A stretch of 62,972 bases of DNA, the filler included, from Trichosphaerium sp. ATCC 40318 (lineage: Eukaryota > Protista > Tubulinea), in NCBI GenBank assembly GCA_038496445.1. It is 5 parts of 5 records of this genome, joined end to end, with 100 filler letters (N's around TTAATTAATTAA, not from the genome) between each part and the next. Parts side by side here need not be neighbours in the genome. Positions count along the whole stretch, not along the records: positions 36,658 to 58,989 come from JALMLS010000327.1; 4 more parts are not named here. One strand, written 5' to 3'. A model generated the notes under the pieces. It was not told the DNA's origin. It saw only the letters and a list, made by a program, of their open reading frames with translations, and did not search any database. Below, in pieces: positions 36,768 through 58,989 of the stretch. The position numbers were made by a program, and so were the translations under genes. Within the stretch, counting starts at the first letter, position 1. Every line of letters begins with the position of its first letter.

Positions 36768-37803
36768 CAGGGCTGAAACTCAGCTAGGCATTGCCTTAAA
36801 GAATGATGCATATTCCTAACATTTGGCATCAGATGGCAAAATCAAGGCATTTGCATTTGGTAATGCCCAATAAAATAAGGCATTTTTACAAAAAGGCAAT
36901 GCCTTCATCAAAAAGGCATTAATACCAGCATTTTTGGGCATCTTTTGGTATTGCATAAAATCAGGTAATGCCTTGTATTGCATTTTTTGGCATTGCATAA
37001 AATCAAGTAATGCCCTGTATTGCAAGTACTTTATGCCTTTATTATGCCTTATTTTTTTAAGCAATATATGCCTTGTATTTTAATTCATATATAAGGCATT
37101 GCCTATACTATATCATAGGACTGATCACATTAAGGAAGTGGTTTAAGGTAAGTAACAGTCAAACAACTTTTACACTTTTTTTTTCACATCACCTACTGAC
37201 GTTTTATATAGACAGGCATCTAGCGCTCTTAGTAATTCATGAAATTAGACGAAACCACCGCCAAACGAACCGCAGCACCCTATTTCACCTACAACAGTAG
37301 TAGGAGTGAACTCCGCGATATTTCCGGGACCGCGGAATTCTAACACTACAAGGTAAGTTTTTTTTTTTTTTTTTTCTACACCATCTCATATTTTCTTTAA
37401 GGTTTTTTCAAATGTGGACTTAGGAGTTTTGTGTATTGTATGTGTACTGTATTATAAAATAAATATTTGTGTTATTACCTGAAAATGCCCTGGTTTATTA
37501 GGCACTGTAGACTATGATAATGCCTTCTTTTTGCCTTCAAAATAAGGCATTGATGCATGAGTTATGCCCTAATTTGAAGGCATAATTCCTTAAAATATGC
37601 AAGCAAAACCATTGCAATCTTGTGTACCAGATGCAAGCATTTTTCATCAAATATAAGGCATTTTTGTAGCAAAAAATAAGGCATTGCCCTGTATTTGCCT
37701 TTTTGAATGAGGCAAAAACTAGGCATTTTTGTAAAAAATAAGGCATTTTTTGATGAAAATGCCTATGCATTGTCCAAAAATGCCTTGTTGAGTTTCAGCC
37801 CTG
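36768..37803. mobile_element. Non-autonomous TIR element A (MITE-like); mirror of 47161-48197
   Basis: TIR CAGGGCTGAAACTCA at both ends; many subterminal AGGCA/TGCCT motifs. Confidence 0.85.
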
Positions 37804-38544
37804 TGTGAGAATTGAATAACAGTATACTGGACACTTACACTAAGTTCAAAGGTATATCAGTTATTATCAAACAGATTGGGCACAATTGGTGGTTATGTGC
37901 AACTACAAGGCCAGTTACCATCACATACAAATGCACAAGGAGTTTCAAGAATGGATGGGCATCGAGTGGAACAGTTTATTTTATTGATTCACACAACTTC
38001 CCTTTGGTTTTAAATTGGCACCATGGCTCTTCACAAAGATCAACAGAGTTATGGCTGTGCATTTGTGTGTGTTAGAAGTAATTATTGTTATATGGTTTGA
38101 CGATTGGATAATAGGTAGATAAGGGCATTTACAACTGACCAAAAGAATTGAATTCCTTGAATTAATCATAGACACTGACAGAGCAGAACTATGCATATCT
38201 GAGTTGAAAATATTCAAGATGTGAGCCCTATTAAAAAACATTATTTGTTCTATTCATATACGAAATTTGGTGCATGTTAAAGATCTTGCAACTTGCATTG
38301 GCAAGATTATTGCTATCAAAGACACATTTTCCCCTGCACAAGTTTTTACTAGAAGTTTTTATAAAACAATTGCTCAAGTAGAAATTTATAACTTACCCTG
38401 GAAGGTTTTGGTGATCCCAGATCTGCAACTATTAAATGATGCCATATGGATATGAAAAGCCCTTCTTCAATGGAATGGCAAGGCAGTATGGTGAGTAAAG
38501 ACAATTCTACAGATCCAAACCAATGCATCTGAAGTAGCCTGGGC

Positions 38545-39276
38545 CAGGGCTGAAACTAAACAAGGCTTTGCCTTAAATACAAAGGCATTTTTGTAAAATC
38601 AGGCATGGATGGCAAAAATCAGGCATTCAAAAATGGCAATGTCTGATTTTGCAAAGGCAATGCCTGTCCTAGTTTTTTTATGCATTGCCAGCCTTAAATT
38701 TACAGGCACCAATTAGGCATTGGTTGTGTACACATTGTACATTAAGGATAGATTGGTTTAAGGTAAGTCTCCACCACACCAACACTTCCTAAACTTTTTT
38801 TTTCATTTACTACTGACGTTTTATATAGACGACGTCACCACGCGCTTAGTATTTTATGGATTCTAACAAAACCACCTTCATTCGAACCGCAGCACCCAAA
38901 TCCACCCACAACAGTAGTACAAGTACTTTAAACCATTTTTCCAGTCTGCGAAAATTATACCAATAATTTGTTAATTTTTTTTTTTAGCTAAAGGTTTTTT
39001 TTCACATGGAGGACATTGCAGTTTTTTGTGTACTGTACTTTAATAAACGAATCACTATTGTATGCCTATATAAAGCCTTGTTTAATGAGTATATGGTGCC
39101 TGGGTTATGCCCAAAAATTGAGGGCAAAAATGCCTTATTGTTGCAATAAAAATGAGGCATTATTGGACCAACAATGCAGGCTATTTTAAGACTAATTAGT
39201 GAACCAGTTGCTTGCTATTTGACCCAAATATGAGGCTTCAAAGCCCAACATTACAAGGCAATGCCTCATATTTGCC
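38545..39276. mobile_element. TIR element B, one end deleted; mirror ~45688-46419
   Basis: Starts CAGGGCTGAAACTAAA and matches the full copy at 48705-49546 but lacks one terminus. Confidence 0.8.
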
Positions 39277-40468
39277 AAACACAGTAGCATGGATGTGAAA
39301 AGGACCACGGGATCCTTACATTGACTTTGTGGTGAAAAAGATGTGGTTGTTGCTTTTAAGCACAAACATGACTTTGTTGCTGCTGGTGTGGATTCCATCA
39401 GCAGAAAACGAAGTGGATTGGCCAAGCAGGATTGTGGATCTTGAAGATTGGACAATAACAGACGAATTCTTCAATTTAGTGGAGGACGTTTTCACTCCAC
39501 ACATGATTGCTTGCTTTGCTTTGTTGATAAACAATTGACTAGATAGGTTCAACAGTTGTTGGGACCAACCTTGGGCAGAAGCAGTAAATGCAATGGCTCA
39601 AGATTGGATCAGAGAGAACAACTACACCTGTCCACCAGTAAGGTTATTGCAGGACATACTAAATCTGTTAGAAAAACAAAAAGCGACAGCTATGTTGATA
39701 GTTTCAAGATGGCCAGCACAGCTGTGGTGGCCAACTCTTTTACGTTTGACGATGGCAATGCTAAAGCTAGGCACAGGGATGGACGTATTCATCCAAGGGC
39801 CCAGTGGTTCTGTAGAACCCTTCAAGAATGTGCATTGGGTGTTTTTGGCGGTGCAGATAAATTAACAGATAATGCTATGAAGGATCTGTCACAAGCACTC
39901 TCTTTTCTGGTGATGGACATAGTGAGAACATGCATAAAAACTATGAAAAGAGAGTGGCGTTCTATTTTCTTCCAGCAAAACCTGAAACTGTAGCATTATA
40001 TATTTCGTCACATTTTTGTTTAGGTGCTACATTGGTGTCAAGAGTGGCATCGGCAGCGATCTCTTTAGTCCACAAGTCCGCTGAGTTTACACCGCTGTCA
40101 TGTACAGGTTGCTTTAATCTCCTTAAGTTAACAAAGGCTGGAATTGAGAAGGCTCAACTGAGAAGAAAGAAGATAGACCTGTTTGATCTAAAAGATTTGG
40201 TTTATTGGTGCAATAACGCGAAAGAGAAGTTTTCCGAGTTCGTGTACCACAAAAACGTGTGTATCATTGCGCTGTACATTTGTACAATGCAAAGACCAGA
40301 AATCACAAAAGTTAAGTTTTAAACCATGAACACGTGGTGGTTGAAAAAGACGGATCGGTTTCTGTCTTGATCGTTTGCACAAAAACTACACAGTTTGGAG
40401 CGGCGCATGAGATTCCTATAGAACCTATTAGGGACGCTGATACTAAAATTTGTCCTGTTAAATTGATT

Positions 40469-41040
40469 TAGAGATGGCAGAAATACCGGTCCGAACCGGT
40501 TCCGGACCGAAACGCAAAAGACCAGTCCGTAAACGGTCCAAACGGTCCGCTGTCAAAGGGAGTACCCTTGGAAAATCGGAAAAATAGCCGAAAAAGGAAT
40601 TTTTGTCAAAGGGTACTCCCTTGGATTTTTATTGGTCCAAACGGTCCCTGTCACAAAATCTCAGAACCCTCCATCTATTGACCTACTCACTGTGTGCATG
40701 CACATAAGGTGGCTGTACACTTTTTGTGGCAGGTTTGAATATCACACTTTTTTTTTTTTCATACCTAAAATAGTTTAGATACTATTATTTCGCGTAAGCA
40801 ATGCACTTGATAAGTTGCTTTACACGCACAAAGTGATAAAAAGATGTTTGGGTGAAAGTGTATGAAAGTATGTAACATCACATGATTTTGTCCAAATGTC
40901 AAAATAACGTCACCACAGGCACATTTTGACTCAAAAAAAGTAGCGGTTAGGCCAGTGTGACCTTGTTTTACCACGCTAAACTTAATTTTGTTAAAACGGG
41001 CTGATTGAGGGCTTTCAACCACTCTATGTGTAGAACTCTC
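40469..41040. mobile_element. Insertion interrupting the YR frame; mirror 43924-44495
   Basis: YR frame CPVKLI resumes as LNYLNITK after ~570 bp. Starts TAGAGATGG; has internal repeats AAACGGTCC x3 and TGTCAAAGGG..CCCTTGGA x2. Confidence 0.6.
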
Positions 41041-41409
41041 AATTTTAAATTATTTGAATATTACTAAACATCTTAAGGATGATGGACCGTTGTTTGTCAA
41101 AGTAAACAAGCGTGACGAGCAATTGGGACCCAGTGGCATCTCAGCAGTGTTTAGACAAGTGGTTAAGTTCGCTGGTAGTACCAAAAGAATCAGTGGGAGG
41201 TTGGCGAGAATAGCAGGAGCATCTTTGGCTGCGTATGCAGATATTCTGTGTGTGGTTTACATGGACATTGCACATTGGTCACTAAATGGAACCAGTGACA
41301 GGCATTACCTACGAAGAGGTCAGGCTGAGAAGCTACAAATATCCAAGCGTATGTTCTCTATATAAATAAAAGTTGTGATAGAGAGGCTCTCTACTCAAAA
41401 CACATAGTG

Positions 41410-41496
41410 GTTTGACTTATGTTTTAAAATTACTCTCGTTTATCATATTTTAATACAATTATACGAGTAATTTCCTAAAACTTAACAAGTCAAACA
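41410..41496. repeat. Imperfect hairpin after the YR stop, candidate DIRS internal complementary region
   Basis: GTTTGACTT..AAATTACTC pairs with GAGTAATTT..AAGTCAAAC; position matches the ICR of DIRS1-type elements. Confidence 0.45.
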
Positions 41497-42254
41497 GACT
41501 TAAGTGTTATTCTCTTTTACAACTTCGAATAACACAACTCTTCTATACACTTGGCTCTTGATGTCGGCTTCTGAACTCCCACCCTCCCACCACGTGATCT
41601 CTATATTTTTAATCACAGCATATGAGCTGTTGTGTCAATGTAAACGTCAGCGTGGGAATGCCGCAACAACTGGCTAGTTGTTTATGACGTCACTAGGACG
41701 GGTGCTTCCTGATATGACGAGAGAGGTTTTAGTGCTTGAAAATTGTGCACAGACATGGTATGTTGTTCGCCTTAATTCAGCGAACAAATATTGTGGAACT
41801 GTAAGATCGGATAGGCGTTAAGGTTTTATTCGAAGAGTGTATATCTTGTACAAAGTGAATTACACATTCTCTGTATACAACTTGGAAGTACATTAAGTGT
41901 GATTTGTTTAACGTTCAATGAATACAAAGTTTGTATTCTCCAACATTGTAGCCAAGTAAAAAGCTCGGTTGTTTTTTGTGATCTATATGATTCCGTTAGC
42001 AGCACTTACATAAATTATGTTCAAAACTACTGGCTAAAACTATTTAAGGTCAAATATTATCAAATAACAGCATCAATCTAAAGTTGTTACACCATCAGTC
42101 TCATCTGAAAGCAAAAACTTCTTATAACCTCTTATAACCATTTATTCTACTGTTGCTAAGTAACTTTCCAATCTCAAAAAGTAAGCAACTAAGTGAGGAC
42201 TTTAACTTTACCAACTCTCCCTTAGCAAATTACCCAAATTCAATATACATTATT

Positions 42255-42581: not shown

Positions 42582-43363
42582 TAACTTAAACATGTTCTAG
42601 CTGAGATTGACAGTAACAATAAAACTACAAAGTAATAAACTCCAACAATGTCCTCTATGCCATGACTAAGAAGAATACAGTCAATCAAAGAATAGAATGG
42701 AAACCATTTGGTAATGTATATTGAATTTGGGTAATTTGCTAAGGGAGAGTTGGTAAAGTTAAAGTCCTCACTTAGTTGCTTACTTTTTGAGATTGGAAAG
42801 TTACTTAGCAACAGTAGAATAAATGGTTATAAGAGGTTATAAGAAGTTTTTGCTTTCAGATGAGACTGATGGTGTAACAACTTTAGATTGATGCTGTTAT
42901 TTGATAATATTTGACCTTAAATAGTTTTAGCCAGTAGTTTTGAACATAATTTATGTAAGTGCTGCTAACGGAATCATATAGATCACAAAAAACAACCGAG
43001 CTTTTTACTTGGCTACAATGTTGGAGAATACAAACTTTGTATTCATTGAACGTTAAACAAATCACACTTAATGTACTTCCAAGTTGTATACAGAGAATGT
43101 GTAATTCACTTTGTACAAGATATACACTCTTCGAATAAAACCTTAACGCCTATCCGATCTTACAGTTCCACAATATTTGTTCGCTGAATTAAGGCGAACA
43201 ACATACCATGTCTGTGCACAATTTTCAAGCACTAAAACCTCTCTCGTCATATCAGGAAGCACCCGTCCTAGTGACGTCATAAACAACTAGCCAGTTGTTG
43301 CGGCATTCCCACGCTGACGTTTACATTGACACAACAGCTCATATGCTGTGATTAAAAATATAG

Positions 43364-46300
43364 AGATCACGTGGTGGGAGGGTGGGAGTTCAGAAGCCGA
43401 CATCAAGAGCCAAGTGTATAGAAGAGTTGTGTTATTCGAAGTTGTAAAAGAGAATAACACTTAAGTCTGTTTGACTTGTTAAGTTTTAGGAAATTACTCG
43501 TATAATTGTATTAAAATATGATAAACGAGAGTAATTTTAAAACATAAGTCAAACCACTATGTGTTTTGAGTAGAGAGCCTCTCTATCACAACTTTTATTT
43601 ATATAGAGAACATACGCTTGGATATTTGTAGCTTCTCAGCCTGACCTCTTCGTAGGTAATGCCTGTCACTGGTTCCATTTAGTGACCAATGTGCAATGTC
43701 CATGTAAACCACACACAGAATATCTGCATACGCAGCCAAAGATGCTCCTGCTATTCTCGCCAACCTCCCACTGATTCTTTTGGTACTACCAGCGAACTTA
43801 ACCACTTGTCTAAACACTGCTGAGATGCCACTGGGTCCCAATTGCTCGTCACGCTTGTTTACTTTGACAAACAACGGTCCATCATCCTTAAGATGTTTAG
43901 TAATATTCAAATAATTTAAAATTGAGAGTTCTACACATAGAGTGGTTGAAAGCCCTCAATCAGCCCGTTTTAACAAAATTAAGTTTAGCGTGGTAAAACA
44001 AGGTCACACTGGCCTAACCGCTACTTTTTTTGAGTCAAAATGTGCCTGTGGTGACGTTATTTTGACATTTGGACAAAATCATGTGATGTTACATACTTTC
44101 ATACACTTTCACCCAAACATCTTTTTATCACTTTGTGCGTGTAAAGCAACTTATCAAGTGCATTGCTTACGCGAAATAATAGTATCTAAACTATTTTAGG
44201 TATGAAAAAAAAAAAAGTGTGATATTCAAACCTGCCACAAAAAGTGTACAGCCACCTTATGTGCATGCACACAGTGAGTAGGTCAATAGATGGAGGGTTC
44301 TGAGATTTTGTGACAGGGACCGTTTGGACCAATAAAAATCCAAGGGAGTACCCTTTGACAAAAATTCCTTTTTCGGCTATTTTTCCGATTTTCCAAGGGT
44401 ACTCCCTTTGACAGCGGACCGTTTGGACCGTTTACGGACTGGTCTTTTGCGTTTCGGTCCGGAACCGGTTCGGACCGGTATTTCTGCCATCTCTAAATCA
44501 ATTTAACAGGACAAATTTTAGTATCAGCGTCCCTAATAGGTTCTATAGGAATCTCATGCGCCGCTCCAAACTGTGTAGTTTTTGTGCAAACGATCAAGAC
44601 AGAAACCGATCCGTCTTTTTCAACCACCACGTGTTCATGGTTTAAAACTTAACTTTTGTGATTTCTGGTCTTTGCATTGTACAAATGTACAGCGCAATGA
44701 TACACACGTTTTTGTGGTACACGAACTCGGAAAACTTCTCTTTCGCGTTATTGCACCAATAAACCAAATCTTTTAGATCAAACAGGTCTATCTTCTTTCT
44801 TCTCAGTTGAGCCTTCTCAATTCCAGCCTTTGTTAACTTAAGGAGATTAAAGCAACCTGTACATGACAGCGGTGTAAACTCAGCGGACTTGTGGACTAAA
44901 GAGATCGCTGCCGATGCCACTCTTGACACCAATGTAGCACCTAAACAAAAATGTGACGAAATATATAATGCTACAGTTTCAGGTTTTGCTGGAAGAAAAT
45001 AGAACGCCACTCTCTTTTCATAGTTTTTATGCATGTTCTCACTATGTCCATCACCAGAAAAGAGAGTGCTTGTGACAGATCCTTCATAGCATTATCTGTT
45101 AATTTATCTGCACCGCCAAAAACACCCAATGCACATTCTTGAAGGGTTCTACAGAACCACTGGGCCCTTGGATGAATACGTCCATCCCTGTGCCTAGCTT
45201 TAGCATTGCCATCGTCAAACGTAAAAGAGTTGGCCACCACAGCTGTGCTGGCCATCTTGAAACTATCAACATAGCTGTCGCTTTTTGTTTTTCTAACAGA
45301 TTTAGTATGTCCTGCAATAACCTTACTGGTGGACAGGTGTAGTTGTTCTCTCTGATCCAATCTTGAGCCATTGCATTTACTGCTTCTGCCCAAGGTTGGT
45401 CCCAACAACTGTTGAACCTATCTAGTCAATTGTTTATCAACAAAGCAAAGCAAGCAATCATGTGTGGAGTGAAAACGTCCTCCACTAAATTGAAGAATTC
45501 GTCTGTTATTGTCCAATCTTCAAGATCCACAATCCTGCTTGGCCAATCCACTTCGTTTTCTGCTGATGGAATCCACACCAGCAGCAACAAAGTCATGTTT
45601 GTGCTTAAAAGCAACAACCACATCTTTTTCACCACAAAGTCAATGTAAGGATCCCGTGGTCCTTTTCACATCCATGCTACTGTGTTTGGCAAATATGAGG
45701 CATTGCCTTGTAATGTTGGGCTTTGAAGCCTCATATTTGGGTCAAATAGCAAGCAACTGGTTCACTAATTAGTCTTAAAATAGCCTGCATTGTTGGTCCA
45801 ATAATGCCTCATTTTTATTGCAACAATAAGGCATTTTTGCCCTCAATTTTTGGGCATAACCCAGGCACCATATACTCATTAAACAAGGCTTTATATAGGC
45901 ATACAATAGTGATTCGTTTATTAAAGTACAGTACACAAAAAACTGCAATGTCCTCCATGTGAAAAAAAACCTTTAGCTAAAAAAAAAAATTAACAAATTA
46001 TTGGTATAATTTTCGCAGACTGGAAAAATGGTTTAAAGTACTTGTACTACTGTTGTGGGTGGATTTGGGTGCTGCGGTTCGAATGAAGGTGGTTTTGTTA
46101 GAATCCATAAAATACTAAGCGCGTGGTGACGTCGTCTATATAAAACGTCAGTAGTAAATGAAAAAAAAAGTTTAGGAAGTGTTGGTGTGGTGGAGACTTA
46201 CCTTAAACCAATCTATCCTTAATGTACAATGTGTACACAACCAATGCCTAATTGGTGCCTGTAAATTTAAGGCTGGCAATGCATAAAAAAACTAGGACAG

Positions 46301-47160
46301 GCATTGCCTTTGCAAAATCAGACATTGCCATTTTTGAATGCCTGATTTTTGCCATCCATGCCTGATTTTACAAAAATGCCTTTGTATTTAAGGCAAAGCC
46401 TTGTTTAGTTTCAGCCCTGGCCCAGGCTACTTCAGATGCATTGGTTTGGATCTGTAGAATTGTCTTTACTCACCATACTGCCTTGCCATTCCATTGAAGA
46501 AGGGCTTTTCATATCCATATGGCATCATTTAATAGTTGCAGATCTGGGATCACCAAAACCTTCCAGGGTAAGTTATAAATTTCTACTTGAGCAATTGTTT
46601 TATAAAAACTTCTAGTAAAAACTTGTGCAGGGGAAAATGTGTCTTTGATAGCAATAATCTTGCCAATGCAAGTTGCAAGATCTTTAACATGCACCAAATT
46701 TCGTATATGAATAGAACAAATAATGTTTTTTAATAGGGCTCACATCTTGAATATTTTCAACTCAGATATGCATAGTTCTGCTCTGTCAGTGTCTATGATT
46801 AATTCAAGGAATTCAATTCTTTTGGTCAGTTGTAAATGCCCTTATCTACCTATTATCCAATCGTCAAACCATATAACAATAATTACTTCTAACACACACA
46901 AATGCACAGCCATAACTCTGTTGATCTTTGTGAAGAGCCATGGTGCCAATTTAAAACCAAAGGGAAGTTGTGTGAATCAATAAAATAAACTGTTCCACTC
47001 GATGCCCATCCATTCTTGAAACTCCTTGTGCATTTGTATGTGATGGTAACTGGCCTTGTAGTTGCACATAACCACCAATTGTGCCCAATCTGTTTGATAA
47101 TAACTGATATACCTTTGAACTTAGTGTAAGTGTCCAGTATACTGTTATTCAATTCTCACA
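43364..47160 (-). mobile_element. Decayed DIRS1-type element copy 1, right palindrome arm
   Basis: Mirror of 37804-41600. Confidence 0.85.
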
Positions 47161-48197
47161 CAGGGCTGAAACTCAACAAGGCATTTTTGGACAATGCATA
47201 GGCATTTTCATCAAAAAATGCCTTATTTTTTACAAAAATGCCTAGTTTTTGCCTCATTCAAAAAGGCAAATACAGGGCAATGCCTTATTTTTTGCTACAA
47301 AAATGCCTTATATTTGATGAAAAATGCTTGCATCTGGTACACAAGATTGCAATGGTTTTGCTTGCATATTTTAAGGAATTATGCCTTCAAATTAGGGCAT
47401 AACTCATGCATCAATGCCTTATTTTGAAGGCAAAAAGAAGGCATTATCATAGTCTACAGTGCCTAATAAACCAGGGCATTTTCAGGTAATAACACAAATA
47501 TTTATTTTATAATACAGTACACATACAATACACAAAACTCCTAAGTCCACATTTGAAAAAACCTTAAAGAAAATATGAGATGGTGTAGAAAAAAAAAAAA
47601 AAAAAACTTACCTTGTAGTGTTAGAATTCCGCGGTCCCGGAAATATCGCGGAGTTCACTCCTACTACTGTTGTAGGTGAAATAGGGTGCTGCGGTTCGTT
47701 TGGCGGTGGTTTCGTCTAATTTCATGAATTACTAAGAGCGCTAGATGCCTGTCTATATAAAACGTCAGTAGGTGATGTGAAAAAAAAAGTGTAAAAGTTG
47801 TTTGACTGTTACTTACCTTAAACCACTTCCTTAATGTGATCAGTCCTATGATATAGTATAGGCAATGCCTTATATATGAATTAAAATACAAGGCATATAT
47901 TGCTTAAAAAAATAAGGCATAATAAAGGCATAAAGTACTTGCAATACAGGGCATTACTTGATTTTATGCAATGCCAAAAAATGCAATACAAGGCATTACC
48001 TGATTTTATGCAATACCAAAAGATGCCCAAAAATGCCTGGTATTAATGCCTTTTTGATGAAGGCATTGCCTTTTTGTAAAAATGCCTTATTTTATTGGGC
48101 ATTACCAAATGCAAATGCCTTGATTTTGCCATCTGATGCCAAATGTTAGGAATATGCATCATTCTTTAAGGCAATGCCTAGCTGAGTTTCAGCCCTG
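47161..48197. mobile_element. TIR element A at the junction of two tandem DIRS segments
   Basis: TIRs CAGGGCTGAAACTCA. Left flank is RT sequence and right flank is MT sequence of a second copy; no TSD. Confidence 0.85.
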
Positions 48198-50575
48198 TAG
48201 TTGTTCTCTCTGATCCAATCTTGAGCCATTGCATTTACTGCTTCTGCCCAAGGTTGGTCCCAACAACTGTTGAACCTATTTAGTCGATTGTTTATCAACA
48301 AAGCAAAGCAGGCAATCATGTGTGGAGTGAAAACGTCCTCCACTAAATTGAAGAATTCGTCTGTTATCGTCCAATCTTCAAGATCCACAATCCTGCTTGG
48401 CCAATCCACTTCGTTTTCTGCTGATGGAATCCACACCAGCAGCAACAGAGTCATGTTTGTGCTTAAAAGCAACAACCACATCTTTTTCACCACAAAGTCA
48501 ATGTAAGGATCCCGTGGTCCTTTTCACATCCATGCTACCATGTTTGTGTTGTCATTGAACAACTCCAACGTATGATTTGGTAAAAGGTCTGAAAAGCTGT
48601 GTAACATCTTCATTACTGCAAGTAACTCCAATGTTGCAATTGTCTCGCCTAAGAAAGGACACTTCCAGTTTCCTCTTGCCTTTCAGTTGTTGCAAGTTGC
48701 ACCTCAGGGCTGAAACTAAATAAGGCTTTTTTTACAAAAGCCATTTTTTTGCCACCAAATACAGCCTTATTTTTCACCAAATTGCCTTGTTTTTGCCAAA
48801 AAAAATAAGCAAATATGAAGCATTGCCTTGTAATGTTGGGCTTTGAAGCCTCATATTTGGGTCAAATAGCAAGCAACTGGTTCACTAATTAGCCTTAAAA
48901 TAGCCTGCATTGTTGGTCCAATAATGCCTCATTTTTAGTGCAACAATAAGGCATTTTTGCCCTCAAATTTTGAGCATAACCCAGGCACCATATACTCATT
49001 AAACAAGGCTTTATATAGGCATACAATAGTGATTCATTTATTAAAGTACAGTACACAAAACACAAAAAACTGCAATGTCCTCCATGTGAAAAAAAACCTT
49101 TAGCTAAAAAAAAAAATTAACAAATTATTGGTATAATTTTCGCAGACTGGAAAAATGGTTTAAAGTACCTGTACTACTGTTGTGGGTGGATTTGGGTGCT
49201 GCGGTTCGAATGAAGGTGGTTTCGTTAGAATCCATAAAATACTAAGCGCGTGGTGACGTCGTCTATATAAAACGTCAGTAGTAAATGAAAAAAAATGTTT
49301 AGGAAGTGTTGGTGTGGTGGAGACTTACCTTAAACCAATCTATCCTTAATGTACAATGTGTACACAACCAATGCCTAATTGATGCCTGTAAATTTAAGGC
49401 TGGCAATGCATAAAAAAACTAGGACAGGCATTGCCTTTGCAAAATCAGACATTGCCATTTTTGAATGCCTGATTTTTGCCATCAATGCCTGATTTTACAA
49501 AAATGCCTTTGTATTTAAGGCAAAGCCTTGTTTAGTTTCAACCCTGGCCCAGACTACTTCAAATGCATTGGTTTGGATCTGTAGAACTGTCTCTACTCAC
49601 CATACTGCCTTGCCATTCCATTGAAGAAAGGCTTTTCATATCCATATGGCATCATTTAATAGTTGCAGATCTGGGATCACCAAAACCTTCCAGGGTAAGT
49701 TATAAATTTCTACTTGAGCAATTGTTTTATAAAACTTCTAGTAAAAACTTGTGCAGGGGAAAATGTGTCTTTGATAGCAATAATCTTGCCAATGCAAGTT
49801 GCAAGATCTTTAACATGCACCAAATTTCGTCTATGAATAGAACAAATAATGTTTTTTAATAGGGCTCACATCTCGAATATTTTCAACTCAGATATGCATA
49901 GTTCTGCTCTGTCAGTGTCTATGATTAATCCAAGGAATTCAATTCTTTTGGTCAGTTGTAGATGCCCTTATCTACCTATTATCCAATCGTCAAACCATAT
50001 AACAATAATTACTTCTAACACACACAAATGCACAGCCATAACTCTGTTGATCTTTGTGAAGAGCCATGGTGCCAATTTAAAACCAAAGGGAAGTCGTGTG
50101 AATCAATAAAATAAACTGTTCCACTCGATGCCCATCCATTCTTGAAACTTCTTGTGCATTTGTATGTGATGGTAACTGGCCTTGTAGTTGCCAGAACATA
50201 ACCACCAATCATGCCCAATCTGTTTGATAATAACTGATATACCTTTGAACTTAGTGTAAGTGTCCAGTATACTGTTATTCAATCCTCACATGTCAACTAC
50301 AAGTCTATACAGTTTAGGTCCTTTTTTGGGAACACAATGCATCGGAGAAACATGCTGCACGTGTCCAGGAACAAGGACGCATGTTTTAATCAAGCACGAA
50401 ATTTCTTTATCCATCCAGTTTTTCTCAGTGTGATTCTTTACACAATTGCTGTTTTTGTGGGCACATGTCACGAATTTCATCCAAAAATTCTTGATAAATG
50501 GTTGTTAATTTTAGTTTTGCATTTCTTCGTTGTTTACTGCATACAGCTGACTTCTCAGAAGCTTAAATAGTATTA
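48198..50575 (-). mobile_element. Second, diverged DIRS segment (RT N-terminus to MT domain)
   Basis: HVSPMHCVPKKGPKLYRLVVDM (RT) and LELLAV..NDNT (RNase H). Direct repeat of ~45340-47160 with scattered substitutions. Confidence 0.85.
48705..49546. mobile_element. Full-length TIR element B inserted in RNase H
   Basis: CAGGGCTGAAACTAAA ... TTTAGTTTCAACCCTG, with subterminal AGGCA/TGCC repeats. Confidence 0.85.
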
Positions 50576-50589
50576 AATTGAATTACTGG

Positions 50590-51986
50590 AGTGTTAGTAA
50601 CACGTACATGGTTTGAGCTTGTCCTCAATTGTACTTTCAAGCATTGCTAAGATAAGTGCTTGAGTTGGTTGTTTTTTGGCTTCTAGCGCCCATATAACCT
50701 TTACAGTCGAAGAAAAGGTCTCAATGATATCATCAATGATTGTCCAGTGGTATGTAGTAAAGTCAGGGATGTTCTTTAAAAACTAAATGCATATCAGTGC
50801 TCTGAGCGTTTACTATAAAAAAAAGTACCTTTTTCTCCACTTCTTTCGTTAATACTTTTAACTCTTCTTGTACTGCTTTAAAGGAGGAGAGCATACTAAT
50901 TTTGGAGCTCCATCAAGTGACAACGTCACGTTTTACTTTTTTAGCTTTGTCACCACATACTTTAATCCATGCTAGATACATGTTGTTGGATGTATTTAAT
51001 CCAGTAATGAAGTGTCGAATGGGCACAAAAATAGAGTTTTCCAGATCCTCTAACACATGTGACATTGCATTGTTCAATTAATTGCTTTGAATGTTATTTT
51101 TTGTGTTAATTTAGTACGTACACATAAGTATACTTGATAGAAGCTACTTCACCACCATCTGTGACACCTGTGACAGGCATGACTTCATCACCCAACCACG
51201 ATTCACCTGAGCTATCAGCTTTGCCTTGACACTTGTGACCAATCTACCAATTGTTGTGGCTGTAATAAACATAAATTAAATAAATTAAGTAATGAACGCT
51301 ATGATGCACCTTTATGGTTACCTTCAACGTATGGTAACCCAATGAGAGCTCGTTTTGGTTTAAAATCATCTGTTAGCGAATGCAGTGTTATTGCACAATA
51401 ATAATCCTTTGTTTGACTACATTTCCAAAGATTGGCAGCAAATGTAGGGTATTTGGCTCTTTGTGTTTCTTTTTTTAAGTCACGCATTGTGCTCTTGTAC
51501 TTTTCGTCAATTATGCCTGTCATGGTATTTGGACAGGGTAATGTGTAGCCTGCAATCAGCTCCCTCATCAAGTCAACAAATTGAGGGTTTTGCACCAAGT
51601 TTAGTGGTAAGTTACCAACCACAATCAGCTTTGTCACGAGTTCATCAATGTGCTAAAAAAAGAAAGTAAATATAGGGAAGGAAGGAGTAAATGAGCATGT
51701 GCACCTTTTGTTTCTTTTTTGATACGGGTATAACACTTTTGTTACCAAAAAAGTCTTCCATTACTTGAGCTTGTTTAGTTTTTCCAAGCCATGGAAATTC
51801 GTCTTCTTTACTTTTGTATCCGTGATCTTTGCGCAAATGCTTGAGCTGGTTGGAAGTGGTGCCATGTTGAGGAGGAACAAATGTCTGACAAAACACACAT
51901 CTATTGTCTGTGTAGTACTTGTGAACGTTGGATCTTTGCTTGTAGTACCTTTTTTGGTGCTCGATGTTGCTTGCCTGAAGTTGCAT
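50590..51986 (-). pseudogene. hAT-family transposase remnant with BED zinc finger and introns
   Basis: CVFC..GTTSNQLKHLRKDH (BED); LPLNLVQNPQF..Y.LP; FAANLWK..YCAITLH (catalytic D replaced by N); RDVVT*WSS (degenerate TRWNS). Confidence 0.85.
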
Positions 51987-53470
51987 TTTGGTGTTCTAAA
52001 AATATTCAAATATTCAACAGAAAGATTCAAATTTGCTATTTTTGGTGTGTATTCAAATATTCAAATTCAAATATTCATAGTTTGAGAATGTTACTACACT
52101 CCATCAACTATTGCTATAAATTACACTGTGCAATACCACACATGGTGACTATCACTATGAAAGTGGGGATCGTCAATTAGCTCTTGAGGTATTTAAAAAT
52201 AGTGTTAGACAACACTTCAGTAATTTAAACGCTTGTCAAAGCTTGTGTAATTGCTAATTTTGGGAACTTGCTTTTTCTTTATTCTTTACACCACAAACTA
52301 ACTTTTTCAGCGTTTCTAGTGCAATGAACGTTGTTTAGGTACTTTGTATACACTTGTTCATATTTTGGTACCATAATCCTTGTTTTAGACTATAATGCTT
52401 CTATTGCTGTTTAAGCACTGTTTATAACTGTTGCTGGCTTGATTAATGTGTTTGTGGGCAATGAAGCTCAGTTGACGCTTTTTTAGTTAAGTCTTAAAAA
52501 ACGCCAAAAAACAAGTAAAAAAGTAAATAATTTATTCCACATGTAGAACGTAAACAATAGAGCCATTCATTCCAAAGGTACATTCACACAGAATAAAGCA
52601 TTGATATGAGAGGTGTGAACCCCTTAAAAAAATCGTTCCTAGTGGTAAAACATAACTACAGCAAGCTTTATGGACCTCTGATTCAATAAAGTACCAAGCA
52701 AGAGTGAATATTTTGACATTTTCATTTTAATATTATGTTCATCAACTTCTATGAAAAAGTAACCTCCGTGTTTTGATACCTAAATTATCAAATACTCTAT
52801 AACTGCATATAGGTACACAATGATTTATTGAACAACTGCCAGCAAAAGGAAAGATTTGAAAAGGTATCTGTGGGTTAGAATGATTGTTCAAAATAGTGAC
52901 CAATTTACGGCAATCAGGTCTAGAGACGGGTGATGATAGCTTTATGTGGAACACTGAAAGTGAAAAAAATTGCAAGAAACAACAGAATGTAATCCTTAAT
53001 CACTATGCTGTAAAAGAATTACCTGCAAAACATGGTGGTGTTAGAGGAGAAGAATGTGATCCCAGGCAGAAAAAACTCGGTTTTAGATTCAATGAAATAG
53101 TTGATTGAAGTACACTATCAATTACCAGCAAGTTCTGGTTTAACAAAATTGTAGACACAAATGTGTTCTGAAGCATACCCAAAATTTGGCCAAAAATAAC
53201 GTTTTTGAGGTGTGCTAGACTTTTTTTGAAAGTGTGAACTGCTTGCAAAAATCGTCCCTACTTTACATTACAGTATCTGTATGGGTATTGATGCAGTTGA
53301 CAACATGAAAACCAAAATAATCAAACAAAATGTTTTTTTGGCAACACAAGGATTTTGTTAAAAACACTGTAGTAATGTAGTTTCTATATGCGTGCAAACA
53401 AAAAGCAAGATAAAAAGTGTTTATTTTCAGTTGTAACAGAGGTTTGTGTCACAAAATGTTGACAATTTAG

Positions 53471-56400
53471 TTATTTTAATTGCTGGCTTAGTCTAGTATT
53501 GATTTCCGACAGTCTTCTGTGAACTTGTTTTAGTCTTTTGTTTTCTTCCAATAGCTTGTCATATGCGGTTGGTTGTTGTATTTGAGTCTCATTTGAATAG
53601 CTAGAGGCCCATAATTGCCTTTGCACAAAAGTAAGTAAGAAAGTGATTGATCGCACTTATTTTGTACCGCTTGTCACCAGTACTCTCTGATGTTGCAGAT
53701 GATTTCTTTGCTCTTTTCCTTTGTATTTGGGGCTCATTCGAATAGCTAGAGGCCCATAATTGTCTTTGCACAAAAGTAAGTAAGGAAAGTGATTGATCAC
53801 ACTTATTTTGTACCGATTGGAGACAAAGTTGTCACAATCATCAAAATCAGACAAGTCATCAGAACCAGATTCACCGATACCCCCTGATGCTGCAGGTGAT
53901 TGGATCTTGTTGGTTTTCTTGGACAGTTTCTTTACTCTTTTCCTGTTTTGGTTTTTTCGTTTAACTGCAATGATATAACGAGCAACAGTCTGTACATCTA
54001 AAATCACAACTTAGTCAACAAAGTACATCAATTGTAATCACTACCTTGAGCTACAACTAGCTCATCATACATTGCTTTATCTATTTTATCTTGCTCCAAC
54101 ACTTGTCCTTTGCTGTTTACCAATACATAGTGACTTTGATATCCAGCTTTAATTGGTTTACCAACAAGGTTATCTTCATCTTTAGGGTTTTCTGTAACCT
54201 ATCAATGCTTTGTAAGTAAACAAACCAGTAATGTGATTGGTTGCAGTTGTGTACAGGATATACATTCCCAGGCGTAACCAAACTAAGCACAAGTGTCTTC
54301 TTGTTGTCTTTACCAGATGTATCATATGAACAGGCATACTTAATGCTGCGCTATTTCAAAAAACAAGTCAGATTGGCAATGGTGACTTTTTAACCATACT
54401 GTAAAATAGATTCCTTGACCGTAGTATCCAGCATCCAACGAACTTAATACTCCAAATCCAGCCTTTACAATACTCCAAGCGGCTTTATGAGATGTTCCGT
54501 GAACCATTAATACAACTGGTAGCTGATTATTGGGTTAACAATGCACATGTATAAAATATACCTGATCAGAAACGTCATGGATACAGGCGCTGGATTTCGC
54601 TATGAGATTAAAAGCATGCTTTGCAACTCTTTTCTTGTGATCATTGTGGTCATCAGTTTTGTTCCATGTGTCTGGTAGGTCTCTAATTAAAACATTTCTG
54701 TTAAGAATTCACTTGTAGTAATAAAATAGTTCCTCAACGTATAAACGTACTGGTGTCTTTGCTTCAGCATGGTATTGTATGTGCCAAAGTTGTCGGTCAA
54801 TATATCATTGCAAACAAGATGAGCTTCTACAACATCATATTTATCATAGCCGTGCATCGTTGACATTTGTTGGTAAAGAAACTGTAGTTCTCTCTTGGCT
54901 ACAATATCATTTTTATTTGAATCAAGAAGATTCAGTGTTCTGAAGTGTGTTGCTTTTTTAATTGTACCCCTTTTTTGTTCACAAAAACAGTTAAACACGA
55001 GTTAATAAATACTTATGTTGCTACTCACTTGCTGTTAGATCTATCCCAGGTGTGGGCATAATGTAATCTTGGATTTAAGTCCCATGACGTCTCACTTTTT
55101 AACCCTTCAAGTTTTAGTGTGGTTGGACTAACAGTGCTTTTTTACCTGCTGTAGGGTTTTCAACTCTTTGATTTGGAGATATAGGATTAATAACGTGTTT
55201 GCAATCCTTGCATTCACATTTTTTGAAACTACCAATGTGCTTAGAGAGCTTCTACTCAAACTGTTAGCAAAAATAACTACAAAACAATTACGTGGTTTTG
55301 ATTATGTTGAGTTGCACAATAACTGCACAAATACAATCCATATTGAGAACACTCATAGCAAGCAAACGCTGTACAATGTTAATAAAAGAAATACCACTAA
55401 ACACATACTATCTTGCTTGGGTACTTTTTGAAGAGAATTTGTACACCATCCTTCTTTTATACACATTTCAATAACAGACCCAGTTTGTTTAGTATTACTC
55501 CACATATCATCTGGTAAGTCGGATAGAATTCCTTCCATCAGCTCTCCTTGCTGTAACCAAAAGCTCTAATGAACCAAAATAAGTTATTATATTACACATA
55601 CTTGTATTATGTGTTCATACCGAAGATTGTACAAATGTGCGATTATATGTACAAATCAAATGACAAATGCCTTTTTGCATTGCAAGTTTAAAATATGGAC
55701 GTGTTGGCTTTGTGTGATTAGTACTTAATAGTTGGTACAAAAGGAAGACATACCAAGTATTGCAACCATTTTGCAAGATTGAGTCGCCAGTGAGGTATCT
55801 CTTTCATATGAGCACATGATAACCATAGTTCACAACTTTGTTGATCATTTGGAAACAGTGTCAAAAGAGTTTCAAACACATTGATGAACGCAGGCTCATC
55901 AGCAACCACCTGTGTTAGTATTTTGATTAAAGCCTCTTTCCATTCAATTGAAATTAATAAAATGTCTATAGTTTGTTTCAACAATGTTTTCAAAACTGGG
56001 TTGTGCCCATTTTTTGCTAATATGAATTTAATGTCTTCAAATCAAGTTTATTTGTATAAATACCTGCACAAATTAAAGCAGTACTTCCATTGTCTCGTTT
56101 GGCTTCAATGTTGGCTCCTGATTCAAGTAATACTTTTATCACATTATTGTGTCCATTAAAGGCTACCAATTAAGAGTATATGTGAGTAACAGATGTTGTT
56201 ATGGTTAAACACAATCATACCTGCATCAATCAAAGCAGTACTTTCATCTTTTTCTTTGGCTTCAATATTGGCTCCTGATTCAAGTAATACTTTTATCACA
56301 TTATCGTGTCCATTATATGCTACCAATTAAAGAGTATGTGAGTAACAGATGTTGTTATGGTTAAGCACTATCATACCTGCATTAATCAAAGCAGTGATTC

Positions 56401-57969
56401 CATTTTTTTCTTTGGCTTCAATGTTGGCTCCTGATTCAAGTAATACTTTTATCACATTATCATGTCCATTATATGCTACCAATTAAAAAGTATGTGAGTA
56501 ACAGATGTTGTTATGGTTAAGCACTATCATACCTGCATCAATCAAAGCAGTATGTCCATTTTTTTCTTTGGCTTCAATGTTGGCTCCTGATTCAAGTAAT
56601 ACTTTTATCACATTATCATGTCCTTTATATGCTACCAATTAAAGAGTATGTGAGTAACAGATGTTGTTATGGTTAAGCACTATCATACCTGCGCCAATTA
56701 AAGCAGTGATTCCATTGTCTCGTTTGGCTTCAATGTTGGCTCCTGATTCAAGTAATACTTTTATCACATTATCGTGTCCATTATATGCTACCAATTAAAG
56801 AGTATGTGAGTAACAGATGTTGTTATGGTTAAGCACTATCATACCTGCATTAATCAAAGCAGTGCTTCCATTTTTTTCTTTGGCTTCAATGTTGGCTCCT
56901 GATTCAAGTAATACTTTTATCACATTATTGTGTCCATTATATGCTACCAATTAAAAAGTATGTGAGTAACAGATGTTGTTATTAAACACAATCATACCTG
57001 CATCAATCAAAGCAGTACTTCCATTTTTTTCTTTGGCTTCAATATTGGCTCCTGATTCAAGTAATACTTTTATCACATTATCATGTCCATTATATGCTAC
57101 CAATTAAAGAGTATGTGAGTAACAGATGCTGTTATAGTTAAACACTATCATACCTGCGCTAATTAAAGCAGTGATTCCATCTTTTTCTTTGGCTTCAATG
57201 TTGGCTCCTGATTCAAGTAATACTTTTATCACATTATCATGTCCTTGAATGGCTACCAATTAAAGAGTATGTGAGTAACAGATGTTGTTATGGTTAAGCA
57301 CTATCATACCTGCATTAATCAAAGCAGTGCTTCCATTTTTTTCTTTGGCTTCAATGTTGGCTCCTGATTCAAGTAATACTTTTATCACATTATCATGTCC
57401 ATTATATGCTACCAATTAAAGAGTATGTGAGTAACAGATGATGTTATATTTAAACACTATCATACCTGCACCAAGTAAAGCTGTATAGCCATTATTATTT
57501 TTTGCTTCAATGTTCAATCTTGATTGTATGCATAACATTACAATAACATGGAGATTGTTGCAAGCTACAAATTGGGTTGATACTTAAGTGTTGGTAAATA
57601 CAAACCTGAATAGAATAGAATGTCGTTTGCTATGTCAAGAGTATGTAGACTTTGTATCAGCACATCACCTAAAGGAAAAGTGTTTTTATTATAAGAGAAC
57701 GTGTTTAAACCAAAGGAGGTACATGTAGTAATATTGGGGTATTTGCATTGAAGCTGCGCCAATTCGGCTATTGAAGATTTTTAATAAACGGAGAGGTAGA
57801 TCAAAGATTCGTTTCTATTACCTTTTAATTCTGATTCTTCGATGCTATGTGGCTCTGCCATGAAGCGTTGTAACCAGTGTTGATTGTATGGTAAAATGGT
57901 TTTAAGTTTCGCCGACGGTTCATAGAATTGTTTGTGTTCCGGCTCGTGTACATTGTTTGCGTTCAACAT
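53471..57969 (-). CDS. Ankyrin-repeat array + UBR-box-like zinc finger + PARP-type ADP-ribosyltransferase (H-Y-E) + coiled coil; many exons, frame intact in manual splicing
   Basis: N-cap, 9 x A(YN)GHDNVIKVLLESGANIEAK(EKNGS)TALI(D)A, C-cap. Then CTN..Q..FACYECS..LCSYCATQHNQNH..CECKDC. Then LMVHGTS..IVKAGF..GYYGQGIYFTRSIKYACSY..PGNVY..YQSHY..MYDELVVAQDVQTVARYII. TAA at 53471-53473. Confidence 0.85.
56064..57564 (-). repeat. Tandem array of ~156-bp units, each a 99-nt ankyrin exon plus a ~57-nt intron
   Basis: Exons at 56064, 56221, 56377, 56533, 56689, 56845, 56998, 57154 and 57310, plus N-cap 57466. Introns read GTATGAT..TACTCAC..TTGGTAG. Confidence 0.95.
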
Positions 57970-58989
57970 ATCTCCCCGTTCATATACAAAGCCTTCTCCC
58001 ACACGTACGATGAGAAGATACGGAGATAATACATATGGCGCAATACAACGCGCAAACACAAAATACGGTTCGTTTGCTTAAAATTATGCGACGTTTGTAG
58101 TTTTTTGGCGTTTTCTTTGCCGTTCCCTTTTTAATACTACAACTACTGCCAAAAAACTGGCTGTACGTGGTTACGTTGCGTATAGTATATATAGAGGTTA
58201 AAGCAGTGGTTTACGACACCAAAAACTCAGTTACGTTCCTATTTCGTTCAGGATTAGTTCCTCGGTACAATAACGCGTGAAACATTAAGAGAAGGGGCAA
58301 ACGATAAAACTTGTTGACAGCACGTGAGGATAAATTTTTCAATTTAACACGTGGGTTTTCAGCCACAACTGTTTTTAGTCTCATTCCTTGCCAGCATCCC
58401 GAACGCAATCAGTACAGCTATGATCATGTACGCCCTAAAAGCTCCTTGTATGTACAGGAATAAAACCTAGAAATAGTTTTGAAATAATTTGGGCATTTGA
58501 AGAGCTGAGATGAACTCCAACTAGTTAGAATTTCCAGTGTGAGCTTCAACAACTCAAAGCGTTACAGAATATTTGCGGTTGCGTAACGCTTACTATTCTA
58601 TAGTTCTAAGATTGCAAATAATGGCTATGATTTTTAGTTTTTACCACTTTATTGCGTAGCTATGTATCTACAGCCAGCAGACAAAAGTATGAAAAGTTCC
58701 TTTATACCGCACAAGAACGCACTTAAAATCTTTCTTGAATAAATATCAACTCAAGGTGGAAACTTTGTTTACAATTGCTTGTTGCTGATAAGCCACTTAG
58801 TGTCATTTGCTCTTAAAGTGTTGCGGTCAAAACTGCAAGCGACAATTCTACTCACTCTCTCAAATTACAAAAAAAAGCATAACAAGCAACATTTGTATTA
58901 GTAAAGCTGCCGTGATTGAACAGTATCATTGCTATGAAATTATCTAAACATGACAAACTGATAAAGCCACTACAATCATGTATTGTGTA

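Follow-up and report, generated by a model that had tools for sequence, protein, structure and literature searches.

How does a gene come to carry a row of ankyrin repeats in which each repeat is one exon and the introns between the exons are almost the same? The question is raised by a gene on the minus strand of a 22-kb piece (36658-58989, from record JALMLS010000327.1) of DNA from Trichosphaerium sp. ATCC 40318 (assembly GCA_038496445.1). The whole stretch analysed, 62,972 nucleotides (nt) long, is called the window here, and all coordinates are positions along it. In the protein, about ten ankyrin repeats would be joined through a linker and a Cys-rich segment to a domain that is probably a PARP-type ADP-ribosyltransferase. 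We consider it probable that the repeats of this ankyrin-PARP gene arose by recent tandem amplification of a unit of one exon plus one intron, followed by exchange between the units.

The piece contains a single strong tandem array, found by Tandem Repeats Finder at 56060-57514 (period 156, 9.3 copies, 91% matches, 0% indels, score 2353). Parsing of the sequence resolves the array core on the minus strand into nine exons of exactly 99 nt each, spanning 57408 to 56064, with a GT-AG intron on the 5' side of each (57, 57, 57, 54, 57, 57, 57, 57 and 58 nt, respectively). At its 5' end each core exon completes a codon with two bases, and at its 3' end it supplies one base (always G) of the next, so that it is of phase 1-1; its product is one ankyrin repeat of 33 residues, of the form AYNGHDNVIKVLLESGANIEAKEKNGSTALINA. 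The nine repeats follow one another with a 33-residue period and conform to the ankyrin motif G-x-T-A/P-L-x-x-A ... G-H-x-x-V-x-x-L-L-x-x-G-A. A query of a single repeat and its read-through tail (51 amino acids, aa) matches Pfam Ank_4 with 24.5 bits (cut-off 22.7; E 3.3e-5), and the Ank_2, Ank and Ank_5 profiles score slightly under their cut-offs with the same query. The intron has an invariant 17-mer, of which the window contains nine copies (0.01 expected), all within the array. An earlier note on this DNA had described one ankyrin repeat per exon with near-identical phase-1 introns, which is confirmed; our results also support its statements that the duplicated unit is exon plus intron (156 base pairs, bp) and that all repeat exons are symmetric (phase 1-1). 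Two details of that description are corrected here. The proposed N-cap upstream of the array is present, but it is itself a 99-nt phase 1-1 exon (57564-57466) that encodes a diverged tenth repeat, giving ten such repeat exons in total (exon 0 and the nine core exons). The repeated intron, said to follow every exon, does follow exon 0 and exons 1-8, but the last exon (56162-56064) is followed by a 47-nt array-closing intron (56017-56063) that is unrelated to it.

Repeat exon 0 (57466-57564; ACNNLHVIVMLCIQSRLNIEAKNNNGYTALLGA) shares ~72% identity with the unit across its 3' 60 nt. It is followed by unit 1 (57310-57465), with its intron at 57465-57409 and its exon at 57408-57310; unit 2 (57154-57309; exon 57252-57154), which reads AIQGH...KDGITALISA; and unit 3 (56998-57153; exon 57096-56998). 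Unit 4 (56845-56997; exon 56943-56845) owes its 54-nt intron to a 3-nt deletion, and unit 5 (56689-56844; exon 56787-56689) carries an RD variant at codons 23-24. Unit 6 (56533-56688; exon 56631-56533) and unit 7 (56377-56532; exon 56475-56377) come next, then unit 8 (56221-56376; exon 56319-56221), in which the conserved turn Gly is changed to Glu (KDESTALIDA), and unit 9 (56064-56220; exon 56162-56064), which has the 58-nt intron. Tandem Repeats Finder also proposed a higher-order period of 465 bp. We rejected it, as the gain in identity is merely from 91% to 92% and the matrix of unit identities has no periodicity.

No two units are the same: they are 87-97% identical in pairwise comparisons of intron plus exon (maximum 96.8%), with a mean pairwise identity of 93.1% for introns and 91.3% for exons, and four of the introns are identical. 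Introns and exons this much alike indicate that the amplification, or a homogenisation, is recent. Only two indels are seen in the array, both in introns, and the nine exons are all 99 nt long and free of stops, which argues for a real sequence under selection and not assembler stutter. Among the core units the most diverged is unit 9, at 87-91% identity to the rest, and exon 0 is far more diverged, the pattern expected if array edges escape exchange. The 18 informative biallelic columns form a mosaic (e.g. unit 9 shares distinct variant blocks with units 2, 4 and 5), and 77 of the 153 informative site pairs are incompatible by the four-gamete test. In tree-only simulations (nine sequences of 157 sites on exchange-free coalescent trees, with as many variable columns as the array, 2000 runs) the mean incompatible fraction is 0.02, and four of the 2000 runs reach 0.5; under strong rate heterogeneity, with only 45 sites mutable, 31 of the 2000 do. 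The best reading is that the units exchanged segments, either by gene conversion or by unequal crossing-over inside units. The view, already taken in the earlier note, that the identity of the introns reflects recent amplification and/or exchange between units is borne out by the four identical introns and by an incompatible fraction far above the 2% simulated mean.

Amino-acid variation among the repeats is restricted to codons 2, 3, 6, 23-27 and 32. We take codons 2, 3, 24, 25 and 27 to be designed-ankyrin positions 13, 14, 2, 3 and 5, which are randomised target-binding positions in a numbering that is reportedly that of Binz et al. 2003. Among the units, the proportion of synonymous differences in exons (pS) is 0.128 and that of nonsynonymous differences (pN) is 0.075; pN is 0.205 at six binding positions chosen a priori, those randomised in designed ankyrin proteins, and 0.042 elsewhere, and pN/pS at these positions is ~0.8 on ~2 synonymous sites. 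Judged from the sequence, the amino-acid changes appear to concentrate on the canonical ankyrin binding face (the beta-turn and the first helix).

The gene is intact, transcribed and spliced. Parts of the gene are found in three transcriptome-like public runs (X1, X2 and X4), which supply the RNA evidence, and in a marine metagenome (X8); their contigs were placed on 53400-58100 at a likeness threshold of 90%. Contigs break or join precisely at the exon boundaries of the array, namely at 57466, 57408 and 57310 (unit 1), 56631 and 56533 (unit 6), 56475 (unit 7) and 56064 (unit 9), and one X2 contig matches exactly the 99 nt of exon 0 (57466-57564) with no differences and departs from the genomic sequence at either end; the predicted splice sites are thus used. 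Eight introns downstream of the array are skipped by RNA contigs (55708-55753, 55566-55620, 55369-55408, 54970-55028, 54683-54750, 54523-54561, 54351-54399 and 53764-53813), and the skipped segments begin with CT and end with AC on the plus strand, giving GT..AG on the strand of the gene.

Some RNA joins look like exon skipping or are in back order (56627 to 57466, 57404 to 56533, 56779 to 57310 and 56009 to 56533). They differ from the reference by 4-8 letters, and the start of the repeat that they encode is AING, ALGG or ALFG, none of which is found in this array, so we rejected exon skipping as their explanation. Since the exons are 91% alike, the threshold was 90% and the codons are foreign, these contigs can be attributed to paralogues or alleles. 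RNA contigs at 90-99% identity have other repeat codons and other neighbours, which suggests paralogues, and the paralogue contigs differ again at repeat codons 2-3. Across 4.7 kb, X1 alone supplies 138 contigs whose identity ranges from 90 to 100% (>=99% in 57, 95-99% in 37 and 90-95% in 44), with up to five variant contigs across one PARP-exon site; so many variants indicate that a family of close paralogues is expressed. A scan of metagenomes with the intron 17-mer returned 42 loci, none of them with blastn similarity to the gene, i.e. chance matches.

Contig ends and read-through were also seen elsewhere in the transcripts. Where the last PARP exon begins, RNA contigs stop at 54198 or at 54194. 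This suggests a pair of alternative acceptors separated by 4 nt, of which 54194 would shift the frame. At the 41-nt intron 57565-57605, two X4 contigs run into or across it unbroken and an X2 contig is spliced there; the X4 contigs could come from intron retention, unspliced RNA or DNA in the library. A marine metagenome DNA contig is identical to the gene over 223 nt (54868-55090), including the intron 54970-55028, which places the source organism in a marine environmental sample. The organism is a marine eukaryote with ~35% G+C and introns of 39-68 nt.

Beyond the array, all downstream exons can be read in an open frame. Five of these exons (54031-54969) probably encode a PARP catalytic domain, with RNA-confirmed introns at 54970-55028, 54683-54750, 54523-54561 and 54351-54399. 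Pfam searches were made piecewise, on exon-sized or stop-free stretches, which limits their sensitivity. PF00644 is found on a 64-aa piece with an E value of 0.0018 and 18.2 bits, below the gathering score of 26.7, as would be expected of a fragment. For a 41-aa PARP exon, 67 of the 100 nearest named protein-atlas clusters have PF00644 (top score 0.88), and a phmmer search of the PDB with this exon was uninformative. A candidate H-Y-E triad (HGT, YGQGIYF and YDELVV, in the expected order) was read by eye. It is probable from these matches that the downstream domain is a PARP-type ADP-ribosyltransferase and the gene an ankyrin-PARP gene.

Several points weigh against recent amplification and exchange in an ankyrin-PARP gene. 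The copy number and order of the units are taken from the assembly alone, and a perfect palindrome of 5.3 kb on the same contig may be a chimera of assembly or amplification; repeated selected changes in a handful of codons could have raised the four-gamete excess; a pN/pS of ~0.8 on the surface fits relaxed constraint or neutral drift as well as diversifying selection; and the PARP assignment comes from short pieces that score under Pfam's cut-off. One rival reading is that the array is an assembly artefact, with the number or order of units wrong (expanded or collapsed), since assembly is difficult for 156-bp repeats that are 87-97% identical. The palindrome, a 100% identical inverted duplication of 5,325 nt with a 459-nt spacer, is of a form typical of chimeric reads, and no independent DNA reads were found to cover the array. 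We nevertheless find an artefact quite unlikely, given that each unit has its own combination of variants, that the exons have kept their length and open frame with indels confined to introns, and that the exon boundaries are backed by RNA contigs. It is very unlikely, in our judgement, that the intron has been kept by function instead of recency, though at 57 nt it is near minimal and might be mostly splice signals or a splicing-regulatory element, which old duplicates could keep. Its variation does lie mainly in the spacer between the 5' splice site and a putative branch region (diversity 0 at the 5' splice site, 0.10 in the spacer and 0.038 in the 3' half), and its overall diversity (0.054-0.069) is lower than the exon pS; that pS, however, comes from ~22 sites and is not significantly higher. 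Moreover, eleven further introns of the gene, just as short (39-68 nt), have no sequence in common with the repeated one beyond GT..AG, so its conservation reflects recency or homogenisation and not a general splicing constraint. A search of the gene against Rfam gave no match, by which a known RNA inside the repeated intron is ruled out too.

The remaining alternative develops a proposal of the earlier note, a DNA- or splicing-level combinatorial repertoire by analogy with brown algae. The array and sister arrays in paralogues would be a programmed or selected diversity generator, with units reshuffled in the DNA between copies or individuals, or skipped in a regulated way in splicing, to give many ankyrin-PARP recognition variants. 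In the ROCO and NB-ARC genes of Ectocarpus, each LRR or TPR is one exon (PMC3341825; see also PMC11378527), and shuffling is evidenced there by extra, inverted or inactivated repeat exons in introns and by recombined repeat domains between near-identical paralogues (PMC3341825). In both systems one repeat takes up one fixed-length exon of symmetric phase, the repeats are joined to a domain with a signalling or enzymatic role, there are candidate families of paralogues, and the repeat domain varies, or here may vary, in an otherwise conserved gene. The array described here differs in its minimal introns of 54-58 nt, its plain head-to-tail order, its repeat type (ankyrin) and its PARP-like partner domain. 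The analogy holds for the one repeat per fixed-length, frame-neutral exon, but not for the spare, inverted or inactivated intronic exons: blastn and tblastn searches of the unit against the 22-kb piece return just the ten in-line copies and the C-terminal half repeat. Such a repertoire would agree with the same splice sites and phase 1-1 of all units (any combination stays in frame), with the mosaic of variants, with the variable residues on the binding face and with the expression of close paralogues (X1 contigs) whose repeats differ again at codons 2-3 (AING, ALGG, ALFG). The absence of spare exons in the 22-kb piece sets it apart from Ectocarpus (PMC3341825), however; no unit-skipping RNA join bears this array's own sequence, pN/pS is below 1, and unequal exchange in tandem arrays yields the same mosaic without any programmed process. 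A DNA- or splicing-level repertoire at this array is thus left without support by its minimal introns, its plain head-to-tail order, its lack of spare exons and the origin of the skip-like RNAs in paralogues or alleles. We regard it as unlikely, and as a speculative idea that our data neither support nor exclude. Slightly less doubtful, although still rather unlikely, is that an expressed ankyrin-PARP multigene family exchanges cassettes within and between arrays, with the binding-face codons 2-3, 23-27 and 32 hypervariable, and so forms a variable recognition repertoire. If true, this would be an innate-immune-like system coupled to ADP-ribosylation, of a kind not yet described with ankyrin repeats.

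Recent amplification followed by exchange would have proceeded as follows. The ancestral gene would already have had one ankyrin repeat per 99-nt phase 1-1 exon, of which exon 0 and the C-terminal half repeat would be the old edges. One internal 156-bp unit was then presumably amplified head to tail, likely through unequal recombination or replication slippage between adjoining units. Later the copies would have swapped segments with breakpoints inside units, a mechanism that would account for the observed mosaic of variants and for several introns being identical. Selection would hold the exons at 99 nt, open and with the scaffold residues kept, and amino-acid differences would build up on the target-binding face of beta-turn and first helix. 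Gain or loss of any unit leaves the frame intact, so the length and the surface of the array would be free to drift or adapt. The array itself is most likely a target-recognition arm that would bring substrates to the ADP-ribosyltransferase domain, as in tankyrase.

The process is a known one, tandem exon duplication in a repeat protein, of which this is a new example; no new mechanism is revealed. A pattern of 'one repeat per exon' in repeat-protein genes was reportedly described by Street, Rose & Barrick 2006. In vertebrate ANK1, ANK2 and ANK3, a 33-aa repeat corresponds to a 99-nt exon and the introns interrupt every repeat at one and the same position, which is read as growth by exon duplication. 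The exon that we describe has the same size and content, but the introns of ANK1/2/3 are long and mutually unrelated, whereas those of our array are still 93% identical and its exons 91%. Copy-number-variable tandem units of exon plus intron, kilobases long, are known from the kringle IV-2 of LPA and from the nebulin triplicate region. As in these, a whole exon-intron unit is in tandem, with near-identical introns, in-frame gain or loss and homogenisation by unequal exchange; the unit here, however, is only 156 bp, with a minimal intron. What the locus offers is a clean snapshot of repeat-protein growth, a 156-bp cassette soon after its amplification, with introns still alignable, traces of exchange and change on the binding face. 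If the paralogues carry arrays of other length or order, they would lend themselves well to the study of how cassettes are gained and lost in frame, and possibly of how the targets of ADP-ribosyltransferases diversify.

The combination of ankyrin repeats with PARP arose several times in eukaryotes (PMC4245714). Like tankyrase and other ankyrin PARPs (PMC4245714), the predicted protein has N-terminal ankyrin repeats followed by a PARP-type domain, and by this analogy a tankyrase-like logic is likely, in which the repeats recruit a target and the domain modifies it. No SAM domain was found by Pfam in the stop-free pieces of 55001-56041 (a piecewise search of limited sensitivity), and on this count the protein falls outside tankyrase proper. 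It also differs from tankyrase in the Cys/His-rich segment and orphan helical linker between the ankyrin and PARP parts, and in its near-identical repeats, since tankyrase has five distinct clusters of ankyrin repeats.

The probable first coding exon is at 57822-57861 (MAEPHSIEESELK) and ends in phase 1; an in-frame ATG upstream, near 57970, is an alternative start. Exon 2 (57606-57767), the N-terminal region before the repeats, has an open frame and loose RNA ends, those at 57769 (X2 and X4) carrying on with the sequence of 57822 onward. It is flanked by introns of 54 nt (57768-57821) and 41 nt (57565-57605), neither related to the repeated intron. On the other side of the array, the exon at 55754-56016 encodes the C-terminal half repeat (AKNGHNPVLKTLLKQ) and the helical linker, as judged from continuity of the frame and from the RNA-confirmed intron 55708-55753. 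An exhaustive HMMER search with this linker exon (87 aa) against 1.84 billion representative proteins found a sole match, a spurious low-complexity repeat protein in a nameless singleton cluster, which indicates that the gene family is absent from protein collections; a protein-atlas search with the linker exon was uninformative. Word-based protein searches with the exon-plus-intron read-through open reading frame (ORF), aimed at sister arrays, gave no match.

The middle exons (55029-55707) have RNA joints and an open frame that can be kept, with introns confirmed by RNA at 55566-55620 and 55369-55408 and inferred at 55252-55291 and 55105-55145. They include a Cys/His-rich segment (CYEC...CSYC...H...CECKDCKH) at 55195-55368, between the ankyrin arm and the PARP-like domain, with the spacing C-x2-C-x8-C-x2-C ... 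H ... C-x-C-x2-C-x-H; possibly this is a B-box-like zinc finger split by a 40-nt intron. The C-terminal tail exons (53474-54010) contain a second tandem duplication of exon plus intron, in two copies at 53576-53673 and 53721-53819 (93-94% identity, spacing 145-146 nt), and the RNA-confirmed intron 53764-53813 falls within one of the copies. This duplication is unrelated to the ankyrin units and suggests a generic tendency to short tandem duplication, not a device specific to the ankyrin repeats.

Elsewhere in the 22-kb piece, two minus-strand ORFs (51299-51986 and 50286-50480) were read by eye as a possible BED-type zinc finger/hAT transposase and a possible fragment of a reverse transcriptase, readings that neither Pfam (E up to 0.01) nor protein searches confirm; a word-based protein search with the neighbouring transposase-like ORF gave no match, nor did Pfam searches with ten ORFs from the neighbouring repeats and the palindrome. 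The arms of the palindrome, at 36928-42252 and 42712-48036, are 100% complementary, and it is either very recent or an artefact of chimeric reads or amplification in the assembly. Inverted copies of parts of it (97-99%) lie at 48027-50191, and a 42-nt tandem repeat is found at each of its outer ends (36938-37024 and 47940-48026).

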